A DNA stretch of 64,000 bases. It comes from Adineta vaga. Taxonomy: Eukaryota > Animalia > Rotifera. Each line of letters starts with the position of its first letter. The first letter of the stretch is position 1. Under the pieces are notes generated by a model. That model saw nothing but the letters and a program-made list of their open reading frames with translations. It ran no database searches and was not told the DNA's origin. The stretch is from assembly GCA_021613535.1 (NCBI GenBank), contig CP075493.1, positions 16,616,001 to 16,680,000 on the forward strand, written 5' to 3'. Positions 7,730-16,232 of this stretch are shown one piece after another. A program made the position numbers and the translations under genes.

Positions 7730-10700
7730 TTATTCATCTCTGGATGCTTCTGGCATAGGAAAATTAGTGTCTACAGTTGTTGATATTTCTGGTTTTGATT
7801 GTTGTGATACAGAAGCACTATTTCGTTTCCTTACTCGTCGATTATCTGCTACGTTATTCGTTGATTCTTGTTGCTCTTTAATAGATGGAGGATCTGTTCG
7901 ACCCATTTTAACACGTGCCATTGCACCCATAATCCAATCGAGTGAATCAATTACCTATAGATATAAATATATATAGTAATATTGCATTTATCAAAGGTAC
8001 ATACTTTATCCAGACGATTATCAACGTGATTTACTCGATCACGAAGATGAGAAATATCTATCTCCATCGATGCAGATTTGTCATTAGTTTCAGTTTGAAT
8101 TCGTGTAAGAGTATTATTTAATTGATCTATACCAGATTTCAAATGCTTTGTCTCATCGTTTGTTGTCGTTGAAAGTTCAGATCTGCAAACATTAATGGTG
8201 GCAATATCTTTTATTTAATTATATTACTTACGAAGTATCTGTGGCTTTTTCATTCGAAACATCATCTGTTTGTGCATCAAACAATCGTCGAACATAATCA
8301 TTGGTAGAATATCGTTCAAATTCTGACCATGCGTCATCAGTGCTGCTATGAATTGGGATCATTTCTAAAATAAATAAACAATCAGATTATACAATTTTGA
8401 ATAGAAAATTGTACTAAAATATCGTGTATGTGTTTTGTTTCGACAACGGAGTTTACGGTAACACCATCGACAGATCTCAAACAATGAAATAAGAAATGTA
8501 AATGGAGGAAATAATTCTGGTCGACCATAATAATCCCGAACTAAACCACAACGATCATACGCCCAAATATAATTTGCTTGTTCTTGTACATTATTTATTG
8601 TAAAACTAAAAACATACTCATTTATAATATTATATTTCAATTCAATTTACCTAAACAAAGCAATGAGTAAATTGAGCAAAAGAATATTAACGAAAAGCAT
8701 ATGAAAAGCGAATAAGATCTGAGTCGCTATCTTAGTACCATCATCTGGTGTATCTACATAGATGAATTCATTCGATATTTATTTTATATATCAATTTTAC
8801 CATTCAAGTTTGAAAGTTCATCATCAAAACTACCAAGAATGAAATAGTAAACTGGTGAAACAATTTTTCTAAAAAATTCTCGACCATCAAAATCAATTGT
8901 ACCATAAGCTGTCATGGCTCTTGATGTCACGCCATAACCAAGTATAACAACTACAATGATGACGGCAAAAAATAACAGATCATTTGTCATTTTTCGAATC
9001 ATAACCAATTTTGGACCTAAACGAGGAAAAATGGTGATAAAAAGAGTCGAACGAATAAACCACAGTTCAAGATCATATGCTAAGACGATTCTTGCAGCTC
9101 CAAATGTCTCTGCATCTTTGAGAACGAAACGTAATATAAGTCCAATATAGAAAAGAAAATATGCTGGTAGAACTATACACAGATTAGAAGATCGATTCTT
9201 TAAATCTAAATAGGTCGATATTTTGCTTTTCCAAGATGTCGCATCTTGAAAAAAGAACTGGAAATAAATTAAAAAAACTAAATAGAATTGAAACGAATTA
9301 TTATGTATTAACCTGTCGAATATCTTCTAAGAGCATCGTAGTTACGAATATAATAGTTAATATCTCAGTCCAGTGAATATGTGAACTATTTTCTGAAGAT
9401 GGATCGAATGCATAGAGCATAAAATAACTGAAGAAGAGCAGGAATAGTATATAACCAAACTGTAAATTCCGGAGAGACTAAGATGAAAGAATATTTTCGA
9501 TATTAAAATGATCTTACACAAGTATAACAAAATTTAACTATTGGACAATTATGAAAATGTAGAAACTGTTTATATATTGGTTCATCAGTTTGATAATCAT
9601 CTCCATAGTTAATACCATATTTTTTCAATCTAAAATGATGTATAAATAAATTGAAATTTCATTCATAAATATTTTTACTGTCGTTTATTTGTTGATCTTT
9701 TGATTGTCTAATAATGAATATAAAATAATACATATAGATTTCTATAAATTTATTAATTTACTTCAATTTCTAATTTATTTGTTTGATCTTTCTTAAAATA
9801 TTTTTCATATGTTGAAGTAATAACTTGTGCAAAACCAATTGTTAACAAATCAATAGTAAGAGGCAAACGTTCTTGAGCTGGATCAATTTTATCATACCAT
9901 ATATTTGTTAATAAAGCTTTACAAGCATCTTCATGTAAAAATTTCTTATCATCAGCAGCAATAGCCATTTGTAAACATGTCACTTCTCCATAGAGATTTA
10001 CACGACGCATGATCAATTCACAAACTTGTTCACGATCATAAAGATACGAACAACGTACACATTCAATGGCATACATTTCAAAATCGTCTGCTTCTAATTT
10101 AAGTTTCGCCTTTGAATCTTCATCAGATGCATGTTTTATAAATGATTTAAGAATTTTCGAAGCAATAAGTGCTGAACAGATACGTGTCTTTAATTGACTA
10201 AGAAATATTTTTGCCATATCAAGTCGATGAGTAAGTATACACCATAAAAATAAATCACGACAAATATATTCACTGTCGAGCCTATTGATACCCATTTCAG
10301 GTGTTATTTGATATTTATTACTCGAGGATTCATGATTATATAATGGTTTCATAAAATCTCCAATCAAGATTTCAAGTATATCAGTTAAATGTATTTCTTT
10401 TGTGAAATCCAGATGTTTATTTACTTTCTCAAGAAGATACAATGGATCGTTCTAGAAGAATAAAAGAATTTCTTTTTAGAGAAGTTTGAACAAATTCAGC
10501 TTACATTTTTGCGCATAATTTTCGAATATAATTCTTTTAGATAAAGTTTCCATGATGTATCTGAAATACTCTTTTTTTCATCCGCAGTAGGAGTAAATAA
10601 AATAGCCAAGTCAATTCCAAGTTTGGTAAAATTACTAACAAACACCACTAAATTTTTATTAAGAGCATCAAAAAATAATCTTCGATTTTCTTGATTCTAA

Positions 10701-13700
10701 AAAAATGAACAATAATCATACAATGGTGTATTATATTACAATTTGAATTTAGAGAAAAAAAAGAGACTTTATTTCGAACTGAAAGTAATGGATTTAGGGC
10801 GCCAGAAAACTAGTCTATTATATCTATCAATTCATGTCCGCAATCCAATCCTTTTACATTCATCTAGAAGACTAGGGTACTAACGACGCTGCGAAACTCA
10901 TAAAATGACTTCATTGTTATTCTATGATGATCGGCAGTGTGTATAGGTCCACTCTTCATAATCAGAGTCTGAACAACTATTTTCATCGAAGAAAAAATGA
11001 TTCAATATGAGTGAGACTGAAATTTCTTGGACGAAGAAATTAGAACATATATGAATTCATGAAGTTTTTTTCGTCTTGTAGGGTCTTCAAATTTATCGAT
11101 GATGTTGGTAGAGTCTGTTGATTATTATGAGTTTTGTTGTTTTCTTTAGTCGCCCAGGGCGAACGTTCCGGCATCTTGAACCGGCAGGAATCCACGGGAA
11201 AACAATAATTTTCCCGCCATATCCAACAAGTAAAACATTGGAAAATGGAAGCAGTATTCCGGTCGGATTTTCCCGCTAAATTCCAACCGTTTTCCGACGG
11301 AACGAAATAGAAGTTGGTCAGAAAACAGCGGAAAAAATCCGAAATTATCCAGTTCGGAATACTGCTTCTATGTTTCTGCCGGAAAGCAAATTGTCCGACC
11401 GATTCCGAACAGTACACGTTTGACCTGGGTCCCTAAATTCCCTTGGTCCTTCTCAGGTTCACGAATCCAACATAGAATCTGATTGGATCCGAATACGGGA
11501 TTAGTGGGTCTAGGCCTTAGTCCCCTTAGTTTTTGCAGTTATCTGGAAGTTCTAATGGTTAGAAGAGTGATGAGGGTAACATCTGATTGAGAGACAATTT
11601 ATTGGTTTTAATTCAAACGACTATTCGTAGGAAAGATAATGTTTCTTGGTATATTCATCGTGAAAGATGTTGATTTGTTGGTTCCCTTAATTCTCGCTTT
11701 AAATATGTGTACGAAGGTTGATTTTTTCCAAAATTCATTTTGTAATATAAAAGACCATAGACTCCCAAAAACACAAAAAAAATCGATGAATAACTTACTT
11801 TTTTCGTATCTTTCCAATTCATTGCATTGTTAATTAAATAATTATCAGTAATGCTCCATCGAAGTGCAAGACGCATTTGATTATCGATTCTCAAACTATT
11901 TTTATCCGTTAATTTCGAAAGATTTTCTCGTGCTATAAATAAATCATAAATGAATTCCAAAAGGAAAATAATTAACTAACCTTGAACCATCGCTTCATAG
12001 ATCTTACTTTCCAAAGATTGGGATAGATTTATATCATAAATATGAATTCGATCACGTAAACTTGGTGTTAAACAACTTACAAACCAATATACATTTTGTG
12101 CAAAAAGTTTTTCTTCATCCATATCTAATAATTCTCCTACCGGTAATTTCTTACCGATAATATTGTACTCTTTCTGTCTCATACTGTGATAAAGTTTTCG
12201 CAAATCTTCAAAAATCTCTGTACGCATACTGCCGAATGGATTCGAAACTTCTCTTAAACTAAATAATAAAAACGAATAATTAAATTCATCATTTCTCTTG
12301 TTATATTTACTTACGTAGTCTTTTCAAATGAATAGTTAAGAAAATGTGCATCAATATTGTCTTTGACATTACTTTCGTTCTCATCAGATTTGAAAATAGC
12401 TATAAGAAATTTAGGAATTGACTGATGATTCGAAAAGCAAAAGGGTTAGAATACTTTGAGACAATTTAAAATATTTGCACATTATTGTCGCTAATGGTCC
12501 ACTTTGCTGCGTTATAGAAACAAAAGAATATATATGTATAAGTTCTGTATATAATAAAAATATTTCATACATCAATAATAAGAACAGGAATCATCTGTTT
12601 CAAATCAGTATATATCGGTTCAAGACTCTGAAGATCAGCTCCGGTAAGAATCGTAACTAATGGTACTAAATTGAAAAGAGACAGTTATACGATATTTTAT
12701 ATATATATAATAATGCTGACTTTTGCGATGCGCTCCGCCTGATAAATGTCTTGCCAGTTTTGAAGCAAAATCACCTGTATCCACTGAACCATGGGTACCA
12801 TCATCAAAAAAAATATATTCTGTAAGATTAGGTTCTAATTTGCATCGAGCAAGTGTTGTATGGTACAAAGGTTTATCATTGTCATTTCTAACATATAGAA
12901 TTGGATAAAGATTTTCAAAAGAAGTTGTACTCACGAGCTGTGCACACTTTTGATAATTTCAATAAAACCAAAGGCTGCGGGTTGAATTTTTGGTGGATCA
13001 ATAATATTACCCCATTTACCAACTCCAACTGCTCTGATGTTTATCTCGGGGTTTTTTATTCTACTTTTATAAATAATTTCACCAATCAATTGTGAAATTG
13101 TATCTTCTTTGTAACTATTCGTGATAATACACGCATCTGAAATTAAATCAAATATTTTCTTGTCACTTTTCAATACTCTTATATCTCCTACCGGATGCTA
13201 TAGCAGCGTCTAAAATTCCTTTCAACAATGCTTTCTCTAATTTGACATTCAATAGAGAACTTGTATCGCTCAACATACGTATAATCAAACCCGGCACATA
13301 TATATTCCATACGTTTAGTAACACTAAACAAAGTCGATCAAAATCTGTATTAATAGCACAACGTAAAAACTATAATACAAAGCAAGAGAAATCAATGTTA
13401 TTTTCAGTACAAAGATTGTATACATACAGGACTATTCGATTGTGGTAAAGCTTGAAAGAAACTGGTAGGTTTACTCTTGGTATGTTTTTGCCAACTCCAC
13501 TCTACCTTCGAGTGTTCATATGTGATATCAATATTGGTATGATTGGATTTATGTCGATTACAGACACAATATTTGTTGTCAACTCTACTCAATAGAATTT
13601 ATTTAATTGATAAATAGTTGATGATACATACTCTCGTGGAATAAACGTCGTACATATTCGTTCTTCAAATTGTAATTTTGCAATAGACGCGTGCCAACGT

Positions 13701-13780
13701 GATGATCCGTTCTATATTTCAAACTAGGATAAGAATGACACAATAGAAACAGAATTTATGCTACGTACGTTTTCAAACAT
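7730..13780 (-). CDS. TRPM-family cation channel, multi-exon: SLOG/MHR1-2, MHR3-4, 6TM, TRP box, coiled coil; no NUDT9H
   Basis: N-terminal W..F..RIC..FIP and CVC; AVGVGKWG; LEPNLTEYIFFDDG; DLFLWCIL; CSALIASKIL; TCLQMA; LLTNIWY; FGPKLVMIRKM; NILLLNLLIALF; W.YDR. Splice sites were traced for several exons, e.g. ATG 13780 with intron 13712..13768. Confidence 0.92.
11153..11429. mobile_element. CACTA/EnSpm-like MITE in a TRPM intron (CCCAGG..CCTGGG ends, CGGA/TCCG-rich)
   Basis: cccagggcgaacg ... cgtttgacctggg. Related right ends at 43899-43909 and 47358-47368. Confidence 0.65.
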
Positions 13781-14163
13781 TGAATTCTTTAAACTGAATG
13801 ATGCTTCGGCTTGTTAACAAAACAAGATTATGATTTTTTTATTATTAGCTGATGAAAACAAAAATTTAACTGTGGTGAATCCCATTTTGTAATAAGAAAC
13901 AAAAGCAAATACAACACACACATCTATGTGATCATGATCAAAAAAGAGAAAGAACCCTTATTTGTATAAACAACCATGAATAATTCCAAGGTTTCGTTTG
14001 TACGATGTGGGTAAATACACAGTTTGATTTTTCTAACCCAGAAAAGAGAAAGAATATTTATTCAAACAATCATTTCAATTTCAATTACGTAGTTGTCTTT
14101 CTCTTTGTATAGAAGCCTCTTTACTTGTCTGTATTTGATTTTTTGTTTATAACAGCGAAAAAG
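13781..14163. promoter_or_regulatory. Putative bidirectional promoter between the TRPM and TIR genes
   Basis: About 380 bp separate the divergent start codons. Function is inferred from geometry only. Confidence 0.45.
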
Positions 14164-16232
14164 ATGAGTAACGATACTGTAGACAAACGTCAACACTTTG
14201 ATGTTCTTCGAAACATCGAAAACTGGTTAAAAGTATTGACTAATCCAAAAAATCTTAACACGACAATGAAGTTATTTGAAGATGAAGATATCAAGGAAAT
14301 TGGTGATTGTTTCTCTGAAAATTTAAAGAAAATATTTGCTGTGTTAATGCCGACGAAACGTGCACAACTTCTCATTATAACATTTACAAGATTAATTCAT
14401 ATTTATGATGCCGATCAGAATGAATACATTACATCCCAACCAGCATTTTTATCTGTGACTAAAACTATTGTAAACGATATTTCTAACCTAATGAATCCAG
14501 ATGAATACGCTGATTATCATACAGAAATACTCAATCTACTTTTCAAGACTTTTGCAAAAGATAATTTTCTCATTCATTGTCTTCAAGAATTCTTTCCAAA
14601 TAAACCAATATCAACTACAAGTAAGTTTAAATTACCATCATTGTTAAAACAGATTTAGCTATATGATAGATTACATTTAGACTTTAACAGTATAACGATT
14701 ATTTAGATCCCGATGTGAACAACAAACAACGTTCACAAACGACTTTTGATGATATCAAAGATTGTCTATTACAGTTAATCGAACTGGCTTATGATCCTCG
14801 AGAAATAACTACTCTTCAATCTGCAGAAGATTTCAGTCACAATTATCGATCTCTGATAGAATGGTTACTTGCATATACCGATGAGTTTCTCAATTGTTAT
14901 GATGAGCATGTTGACTCCGAATCTCAACTCGATAACATCGATAATATATTCGGTATAATAATAAATTTAGCTGACATAATTTCGTTAGTACCGATGTTTA
15001 TTGACGCTAAATATGCCGAAACGACTGTTAAATGGTTAATACAACCATCGTTACTTGATTTTATTTATCAATTTGGAGAAAGCATTATGCGGCTTATATA
15101 CAATCTCTCCAGACATAAAAAAGGTTTGAAAAAATTGCGAGAAATTGGAACATTTAAGATTTTGATGGAGCATAAGGAGCTTATAAAGAAAACAGGTAAT
15201 CCCGATTTAATCGAATCATTTGGCATGCTATTAATTGCGTTAGCAAGAAATGACGATGAAGAAAAACAAAATGAAGATGTTATCCTACCAGTTAGTGCCA
15301 ATCTTTTCGAGAGTATCAAGAAAGCTTTCAGTAGTGAAGACTGGAGACATGATGGATGTCATTTGTCCGAATATCTTTATTCACTTCAAGGTGCATTTTC
15401 AAACAAAACGATTGTCCAACATATATTGGGTGATTCAAACCATGTGAAAAAAGATAATATTCAAATTTTTATAGAACTTTTCCGTTCCAATTATGGTCTA
15501 TTATTTAATCAAGATGTAAATGATCTCGAGAAGCTTGTTGTCAAGTCTTTATTAAATATTATTTTGTGCATTTCGAATTATAAAGAATATCGTTCTGTAC
15601 TAACTGATGATGTTTTTTTAGGCGTTATTATTGAAAGTCTTTCTAAACAACCTAGACAAGCTGTTGCCAAACGAATTTGGTCAAATCTTAACCATTCTGA
15701 AAATTCAAAATCGTTTTTAAATAAATTAAAAAAAGACAAAACAACAGAGATCTATATTAGTTATAACTGGACTGATGGAGAATATTGTCGTAAATTTGTT
15801 AAGTCTTTACGTGAACAGAGAAAATTTTCAATTTGGGTCGATTATGAAGAAACAGATGAAAATGAAGATCCTTGGGATTATGTAGCGCCAGTTATTGAAT
15901 CTGCGACAGTAATTATTATCTTAGCATCGAGTGCTTATGCTTATAGTAAACATAATCGCCAGGAATTAAATTATGCAATGCGATCCGAATTATCCGGCGA
16001 GAAAAAAAATTTTATCGCCGTCAATATTGAACCTACATTTCATTTTGATCCATTGCGGATAAACGATTCGTTAACAGTAGATGAAATCTTATCGAATGGG
16101 GATAGTATCGAAACATTGGCTCTTAAAACTGCTGTTCACATAGATCTTTTAAAGTGCAAAACACAAGTGTCACATTCGAGCTCATCTACCACTATCAGTA
16201 CCATTCAATCAATTGTTTGTACTCTCATGTGA
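14164..16232 (+). CDS. ARM/helical-repeat + TIR (TIR_2-type) protein with C-terminal CaaX; exons 14164..14620 and 14707..16232
   Basis: TIR motifs IYISYNW, SIWVD, IESATVIIILAS, S..NRQELNYA. ARM-like LIYNLSRH. Ends CTLM*. An 86-nt phase-1 GT-AG intron joins the ORFs. Confidence 0.88.

Follow-up and report, generated by a model that had tools for sequence, protein, structure and literature searches.

A conserved head-to-head pair of TRPM channel and ARM-TIR genes in bdelloid rotifers, a candidate TIR-to-SLOG signalling module

We analysed a stretch of 64,000 nucleotides from the genome of the bdelloid rotifer Adineta vaga, hereafter the window (contig 1, positions 16,616,001-16,680,000, of an AT-rich assembly of 100.8 Mb in six contigs). 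In the window, a gene for a channel of the TRPM family and a gene for a protein combining armadillo (ARM) repeats with a TIR domain are arranged head-to-head. The channel gene extends over 7730..13780 on the minus strand and the ARM-TIR gene over 14164-16232 on the plus strand. They are separated by a spacer of ~380-408 bp (13781..14163), the presumed bidirectional promoter of both. A selected, co-duplicating TRPM/ARM-TIR gene pair almost certainly exists in bdelloids, and a literature search found no description of a TRPM-TIR linkage. As to function, our leading reading is that of a producer-receptor module, in which a TIR regulated by its ARM repeats and anchored at the membrane would make an ADP-ribose (ADPR)-type nucleotide; the SLOG domain of the cognate channel would read this nucleotide, thereby opening the pore. 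We put the probability of this reading at roughly 0.45. An earlier note on this DNA had described the two genes as a multi-exon, minus-strand TRPM gene lacking a NUDT9H domain and, about 380 bp away in head-to-head orientation, a plus-strand ARM-TIR gene with its ATG at 14164 and a glutamate at the catalytic position of the TIR (SKHNRQELNYA). Each of these elements is borne out by the analyses presented below.

TRPM and TIR loci were counted by six-frame scans of all six contigs of the A. vaga genome, which contains ~33 of the former and ~90 of the latter. A TIR lies within 8 kb at three of the 33 TRPM loci, each time in divergent orientation, where 0.46 would be expected (P ~0.01). The three pairs are that of the window and two on contig 5, at 2.09 Mb (locus B) and 4.98 Mb (locus C). 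They comprise all three A. vaga loci of one clade of TRPM channels, and the other ~30 TRPM loci are unpaired. Compared with the window, locus B shows 41-80% amino acid identity in the channel exons and 54% in the TIR protein; for locus C the values are 59% in the MHR3/4 exon and 37% in the TIR protein.

The same divergent pair is found in other bdelloids. In Rotaria magnacalcarata, where it was reached from the TIR homologues, it is present in three assemblies (TRPM on the minus strand, TIR on the plus strand) with a spacer of ~850 bp. Rotaria socialis carries it at two loci, one with a spacer of 630 bp and the other with a spacer invaded by transposon sequence. Adineta steineri and three environmental bdelloid lineages also possess it, so that the head-to-head arrangement is kept in at least eight lineages, with TIR identities down to 35%. 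A profile of the MHR3/4 exon retrieved 12 metagenome contigs; the five with enough upstream DNA, which represent two distinct lineages, all carry an ARM-TIR gene head-to-head with the channel. Didymodactylos has a channel of the linked clade, but its contig is not long enough to reveal the adjacent gene. No TRPM gene lies next to the distant ARM-TIR relatives from Didymodactylos, Rotaria sp. and environmental samples, whose identity is 24-30%. In an all-against-all comparison of the flanking open reading frames (ORFs), no other neighbour was conserved between lineages or genera. Chance co-location is rejected because the pair is conserved while its flanks turn over, and the matching of the trees described below argues in the same direction. 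This conservation across genera is a stronger argument than the genome-wide enrichment.

Phylogenetic trees were compared for the two genes. In the MHR3/4 exon tree, the TIR-linked channels form one clade (support 100/99, stem 0.99); outside it fall all 14 of the unlinked A. vaga paralogues in the tree, which are at most 38% identical to the window exon. A tree built on the large TIR exon likewise unites the linked TIRs in a single clade (100/100, stem 1.34) that excludes their unlinked relatives. For the shared taxa both trees have a single topology, in which the window, locus B and A. steineri are opposed to a group made of locus C and Rotaria, {R. socialis-2, ((R. magnacalcarata, R. socialis-1), (A. 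vaga locus C, environmental))}. The position of A. vaga locus C among the Rotaria loci implies that the duplication of the pair, as one unit, preceded the separation of Adineta from Rotaria, and the pair is still head-to-head in every examined descendant but one. The dN/dS ratios (nonsynonymous over synonymous substitution rates) of 0.16-0.52 for both genes indicate purifying, fairly relaxed selection. Animal genomes seldom contain gene pairs that are conserved and duplicate together. The earlier note had proposed linkage above chance, its conservation in relatives and co-diverging trees as checks; all three are observed for the pair, and the flank control shows that the pair alone is conserved in Adineta, Rotaria and environmental bdelloids.

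Several of the paired loci carry additional elements. At locus B, a second ARM-TIR copy is located between the channel and the main TIR (L002:2621-3725; contig 5, ~2,092,600-2,093,700). It is fragmentary, with in-frame stops and its middle part gone, keeps the glutamate at the catalytic position, and looks like a decaying tandem duplicate. At locus C, an extra ARM-TIR gene (L004:7560-8744; contig 5, ~4,991,560-4,992,744; 24% identity, ending C-I-L-L) lies downstream of the channel and shares its strand; this gene belongs to the unlinked outgroup family. In one R. socialis assembly, a retrotransposon with reverse transcriptase, RNase H and integrase (L007:1-1982) lies upstream of a TIR, on the channel's usual side; other assemblies have the TRPM channel on that side, 3.7-8.4 kb away. 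In some assemblies of A. steineri, a second channel of the same clade is placed tail-to-tail downstream of the TIR (L016:7991-12134, L042:16522-16839), and the assembly of L041 has only a small fragment there; the pairs may be arrayed in tandem, or the haplotypes may differ. A 7tm_1 G-protein-coupled receptor gene near locus B (L001:1-2169) has a 39%-identical counterpart beside an unpaired R. socialis TIR (L014:12753-15993), which may be a coincidence within a large family or the remnant of an older synteny.

The spacer of the window contains a purine-rich 10-mer, AGAGAAAGAA, at 13945-13954 and 14045-14054, inside a direct repeat of ~35 nucleotides. The whole 64-kb window has just three copies of it, and the spacers of locus C, of Rotaria and of one environmental locus contain it as well; we regard it as a candidate cis-element with weak statistics. 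The claim of a cis-element shared among the spacers was dropped, as the best 10-mer is found in five of nine spacers against a null maximum of four, and R. magnacalcarata and R. socialis-1 (Rm/Rs1) are close relatives.

The ARM-TIR gene corresponds to A. vaga I4U23_005418, for which a public protein model of 687 residues (P0001) starts at the ATG at 14164. Exon 1 (14164..14619, plus strand) encodes 152 residues of N-terminal helical repeats, identical to residues 1-152 of P0001, and ends at a GTAAGT donor at 14620. Exon 2 (14706..16232, plus strand, stop codon at 16230-16232) encodes the rest of the armadillo-like repeats, followed by the TIR domain and a C-terminal CaaX tail. The TIR domain corresponds to residues 500-635 of P0001 (15747..16154, plus strand) and is recognised by Pfam TIR_2 with an E-value of 9e-14 in the ORF 14715-16232. 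An exhaustive search of 1.84 billion representatives returned 155 relatives of the protein. Names were looked up for a part of the ARM-TIR relatives, and every named one of these is bdelloid; weaker matches to the TIR alone include a protein of a chytrid fungus.

An AlphaFold model built with 37 homologues (mean predicted local distance difference test, pLDDT, 78) consists of an ARM solenoid (about residues 47-487), a linker of ~15 residues and the TIR domain. The top Foldseek matches of the whole chain are human SARM1 and Caenorhabditis elegans TIR-1, at a sequence identity of ~12%. ARM proteins score a Z of ~15; Z values for helical repeats carry the tool's own caveat. The TIR domain alone superimposes on the TIR of SPARTA TIR-APAZ with a VIA Z of 16.4 and a root-mean-square deviation of 2.4 over 134 residues, followed by AbTir (Z 14.9) and RUN1 (Z 14.5). 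In the model, the TIR fold is thus closest to those of enzymatic (NADase) TIRs. The putative catalytic residue is E572 of P0001 (GAA codon at 15963..15965, plus strand), in the motif '...NRQELNYA'. It aligns with the catalytic Glu77 of SPARTA TIR-APAZ, numbered as in Table S5 of 10.64898/2026.04.20.719644. An equivalent glutamate is kept in every linked TIR copy and in the outgroups. No SAM domain was found in a Pfam search, and between ARM and TIR the model has only a low-confidence linker (residues 485-494). There is thus no room for SAM domains, and we rejected orthology with SARM1.

The protein ends with the CaaX box C-T-L-M (16218..16229, plus strand), a predicted farnesylation signal. 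Orthologues and paralogues end in CILM, CTIT, CTMM, CSIT, CTIM or CTIA, many environmental copies included, and the box is preceded by a conserved Q-S. Even distant members of the ARM-TIR family terminate in CaaX-like tails. The public model P0001 splices this tail away after 'H-I-D-L-L-K' (16154-16232) and adds a 52-residue tail with a pLDDT of ~33. Because the unspliced end of the ORF (stop at 16230) matches the orthologues, the last intron of I4U23_005418 is probably an annotation error. The CaaX box suggests that the ARM-TIR protein is located at the cytosolic face of a membrane; it is thus probably membrane-anchored, where the channel sits. Two departures from this tail were observed. In one sub-lineage of linked TIRs, the CaaX box is replaced by '...Q-T-G-S-x-x-x-S-T/S-W-V', which has the look of a class I PDZ-binding motif (C-termini examined at L015:10223-11518, L050:365-1669 and L003:6385-7830; the proteins listed with this observation are P0013, P0016, P0020, P0025, P0026, P0031, P0036 and P0040). 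The TIR of A. vaga locus C ends differently, in A-N-Q-M.

The TRPM gene was analysed exon by exon throughout, using Pfam, matches to solved structures, profiles and trees. It comprises ~19 exons and ends with a stop codon at 7730-7732. Its 5′ end is uncertain: the ATG at 13780 opens 18 codons followed by a stop, so a start there would need a splice. Nineteen stop-free exon segments on the minus strand (7733-13755) are kept in the paralogous locus B on contig 5, and the segments are also conserved with the Rotaria, A. steineri and environmental loci. The intactness of the gene, as read from its sequence, is consistent with this conservation of its exons. Exons T03-T08 (11979..13369, minus strand) encode the N-terminal SLOG or MHR1-2 region. 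T03 (13166-13369) matches positions 3-61 of LSDAT_euk (PF18139) with an E-value of 1.5e-4, a weak match below our cut-off for single exons, and its profile aligns to residues 111-167 of nvTRPM2. The full-length Rotaria orthologues carry both PF18139 and PF18171, so that the N-terminal SLOG domain characteristic of the TRPM family is present.

Exon T11 (9756..10451, minus strand) encodes MHR3/4, the TRPM2-like domain PF25508 (Pfam E-value 1.9e-30), and matches 62 TRPM chains among the solved structures, the best being human TRPM2 (6mix_A, 8e-20). A protein search with T11 returned only fragments among its matches, none with SLOG exons. Exons T13-T16 (8368..9477, minus strand) encode the pore and the TRP helix together with the transmembrane segments, among them the S4-S5 region 'GPKLVMIRKM'. 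Within this region, the transmembrane exon 8787-9326 matches TRPM5 (1.6e-10) and nvTRPM2 (5.6e-10), and the TRP-helix exon 8368-8646 matches residues 1083-1142 of nvTRPM2 (1.7e-8). These structure matches establish the succession of a six-transmembrane pore module and a TRP helix that is expected of a TRPM. In other members of the clade a short intron follows '...F-G-A-A-R'; it is missing from the window channel (8787-9326), an apparent intron loss. Exons T18-T19 (7733..8214, minus strand) encode a C-terminal coiled-coil-like stretch, with weak matches to coiled-coil-type Pfam families, and the tail. Pfam searches of the last exons and of the ORFs beyond the stop at 7730 gave no NUDT9H match. 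The Rotaria orthologues, of 1056-1264 residues, have only LSDAT and TRPM2 families on record and no NUDIX family.

One intron of the channel gene contains ~960 bp of extra DNA (10697..11657) that is absent from locus B, where the exons flanking this position are only 24 bp apart. An ORF inside it (11040-11417) had no match in a Pfam search. A piece of 33 nucleotides (11240-11272) has matches on unrelated contigs of RNA-like runs, a hint that this segment contains a dispersed repeat.

The SLOG region of the linked clade is remodelled at both of its glycine loops. Used as profiles, the first two SLOG exons can be aligned with nvTRPM2 and TRPM8 at E-values of ~0.05-0.07, within a gene otherwise established as a TRPM. 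In the first loop, the linked clade has 'I-S/G-D-A/T-x-S/T' where TRPM2 and TRPM8 have 'V-T-G-G-A-K-x-F', a motif also recovered from several unlinked rotifer paralogues (L026, L028, L039). In the second loop, 'T-x-x-Y-K-E-E/D-S/T-I-S', with one extra residue, stands in place of the 'T-G-G-x-x-x-G' of TRPM8 and other rotifer TRPMs. In the window this loop is encoded by exon T04 (12982..13137, minus strand) and reads 'IIT-N-S-Y-K-E-D-T-I-S', followed by the conserved G-K-W-G-N. In human TRPM2, the second loop is the β5-α3 loop that clamps ADPR, and the MHR1/2 cleft is the orthosteric ADPR site, which also binds 8-Br-cADPR (PMC6759353). Both glycine loops being replaced, the pocket is not TRPM2-like. 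However, both changed loops are strictly conserved inside the linked clade, from Adineta to Rotaria, and this pattern fits a retained but different binding function. Exon T08, which covers part of the ADPR pocket, had no match among the sequences of solved structures, whether alone or as a profile of seven sequences. Outside SLOG, the Asp of the 'N-x-x-D' Ca2+-site motif in S3 aligns to Ile or Leu across the clade, in a local and weak alignment. As to the earlier suggestion that SLOG acts as an ADPR-type receptor, the domain is present, and its changed loops speak against a simple TRPM2-like ADPR pocket.

On the leading reading, the two genes would form a signalling module specific to bdelloid rotifers and expressed from their short, shared divergent promoter. 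The product of the first gene, a SARM1-like ARM-TIR protein without SAM domains, would be placed by its CaaX box at the cytosolic membrane face, where the ARM solenoid would restrain the TIR until a trigger is sensed. Using its conserved glutamate, the TIR would then cleave or cyclise nicotinamide adenine dinucleotide (NAD+) to an ADPR-type nucleotide, that is, ADPR, cyclic ADPR (cADPR) or an isomer. The remodelled SLOG (MHR1/2) of the TRPM channel encoded by the second gene would be the receptor for this product, and its binding would open the channel. During immunity or stress, the resulting cation entry could act as a Ca2+/Na+ signal or lead to cell death. More narrowly, we tentatively propose that the TIR-to-SLOG immune logic of bacteria has an animal counterpart in this pair, in which a specific NAD-derived messenger would be read by the remodelled SLOG of the linked TRPM. 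The paralogous pairs may have diverged into insulated communication channels.

The module of sensor enzyme and receptor channel proposed in the earlier note is supported in part: the linkage, the catalytic glutamate, the ARM-plus-TIR architecture and the enzymatic-type fold agree with it, and the replaced SLOG loops speak against a simple TRPM2-like ADPR pocket. Several further observations weigh against the producer-receptor reading. The glycine-rich β5-α3 loop that holds ADPR in TRPM2 is lacking, the new acidic second loop is no obvious phosphate binder, and the equivalents of TRPM2 Y295, R302 and R358 could not be mapped, T08 being without a match. Pure cADPR is reported not to activate TRPM2 (PMC8949931). 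One R. socialis TIR paralogue has a transposase-like gene in place of the TRPM channel. Co-divergence of the trees is expected of neighbours that duplicate together, and so indicates retention of the linkage and not a biochemical link. In the RNA look-ups, none of the organisms or samples holding a locus was recorded as RNA, and four RNA-like runs gave only spurious overlaps of 20-33 nucleotides; these runs contained no contigs of either gene, which does not prove that the genes are silent. All steps from the activity of the enzyme and the nature of its product, through binding by SLOG and gating, to the biological role are ones that we infer.

Three other explanations account for part of these data. 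The two proteins might be co-regulated partners in one response, sharing a bidirectional promoter without a direct small-molecule link, since the same cells would require both, for instance in a programme of immunity or cell death; the TIR would act by NAD+ depletion or as an adaptor while the channel answers another cue, or, in the reverse order, Ca2+ entry through the channel would activate the ARM-TIR protein. The short divergent spacers (~400-900 bp) fit a shared promoter, the nucleotide loops of SLOG are not conserved, and in a published screen a Rotaria sordida TIR depleted NAD+, beyond any role in signalling. However, co-expression alone rarely keeps a pair together through duplications and a genus split while its flanks turn over, and the strong conservation of the remodelled loops within the clade points to a retained binding function. 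We therefore regard co-regulation alone as rather unlikely. The proteins might instead form a physical complex, a 'chanzyme in trans', in which the farnesylated ARM-TIR protein docks through its ARM repeats on the cytosolic face of the channel and plays the part of the fused NUDT9H or kinase domains of TRPM2, TRPM6 and TRPM7. Co-evolving interfaces would then explain the strict pairing of paralogues, each duplicated channel having kept its own TIR partner. ARM solenoids serve as scaffolds for protein binding, the enzyme would be brought to the membrane by its CaaX tail, and the PDZ-ligand-like S/T-W-V tail of one sub-lineage could provide an alternative targeting to membrane complexes. Against this, the ARM domain of SARM1 is an autoinhibitory ligand sensor and not a docking module, and we consider a complex of this kind improbable.

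Neutral linkage is the third explanation: two members of large families would have become neighbours once and would not yet have been separated. It agrees with the single origin of all pairs from one ancestral pair and with the modest genome-wide enrichment (3 versus 0.46). It accords poorly with the survival of the arrangement in at least eight lineages of Adineta, Rotaria and uncultured bdelloids whose flanks differ everywhere, with the entry of transposons into some spacers without separation of the genes, and with purifying selection on both genes. Neutrality is thus very unlikely. The producer-receptor reading remains, at the probability given above, the one under which we consider the meaning of the pair.

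We know of no reader of a TIR-made cADPR signal in animals. The pair nominates a TRPM with a clade-specific SLOG as a concrete animal candidate for a receptor of the NAD-derived signals that TIRs make. Should the producer-receptor reading be true, this channel would, as a TRPM gated by a 'private' ligand, become the first animal receptor cognate to a TIR-made signal, and the ARM-TIR protein would represent a new type of TRPM gating partner, supplied in trans. The TIR/SLOG logic of Thoeris and the SARM1-Ca2+ link would then extend to a defined animal module, to which the CaaX box, missed by the public annotation, adds an element of membrane localisation. Recent data bear on the enzymatic side of this proposal: according to a 2026 preprint, many animal TIRs, those of rotifers included, make cADPR in a glutamate-dependent manner (10.64898/2026.04.20.719644). 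In the same source, the A. steineri protein A0A814VN55 was tested and makes cADPR, its cluster being represented by a Didymodactylos protein. This representative is a distant relative (29%) of the window ARM-TIR family. Accessions of direct orthologues of the window TIR were not found in the part of the supplementary tables available to us, and TRPM is never mentioned in the preprint.

Compared with known systems, the rotifer protein resembles SARM1 and TIR-1 in its N-terminal armadillo solenoid and in its C-terminal TIR with a catalytic glutamate. It differs in lacking the tandem SAM domains, so that a SARM1-type octamer is not expected, and in possessing a CaaX box. To our knowledge SARM1, unlike the rotifer ARM-TIR, is not gene-paired with a channel. 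In mammals, SARM1-made cADPR raises axonal Ca2+ (PMC8704956). On the channel side, the rotifer protein belongs to the same family as TRPM2 and nvTRPM2; its MHR3/4 is nearest to human TRPM2, and its SLOG and TRP-helix exons align best to nvTRPM2. However, it lacks NUDT9H, both of its SLOG glycine loops are remodelled, the S3 Asp aligns to Ile or Leu, and a long stem separates the linked clade from the other rotifer TRPMs. Orthology with TRPM2 was rejected, as the channel has neither NUDT9H nor the ADPR loop.

The nearest bacterial logic is that of type I Thoeris (the TIR protein ThsB and the SIR2-SLOG protein ThsA), with which we group the Thoeris variants that have membrane effectors. In Thoeris, the product of a bacterial TIR binds SLOG and switches the effector on, and as in the rotifer pair a TIR with a catalytic glutamate is encoded beside a SLOG-bearing effector. 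The SLOG of ThsA superimposes on that of TRPM2 (10.1101/2021.01.06.425286). The rotifer genes differ in forming a eukaryotic divergent pair and not an operon, in having as effector a TRPM channel and not a SIR2 NADase, and in a SLOG of the animal TRPM type. The description of the pair as Thoeris-like therefore stands as an analogy of logic, based on the conserved adjacency of TIR and SLOG genes; we found no evidence of common descent or of a horizontal origin, the exhaustive protein search having returned rotifer relatives and weak matches to the TIR alone. A TIR with a catalytic glutamate and SLOG are also combined in other animals, as fusions in tardigrades and Macrostomum (A0A1D1V4B3, A0A9X6NDW2 and A0A267GNU3), which are marked as not experimentally tested in Table S2 of 10.64898/2026.04.20.719644. 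These differ from the rotifer pair in being single polypeptides and could serve as an independent 'Rosetta stone' for it. The proposed module thus works like Thoeris and like the SARM1-Ca2+ axis and is a member of neither, and its channel is a TRPM, not TRPM2.

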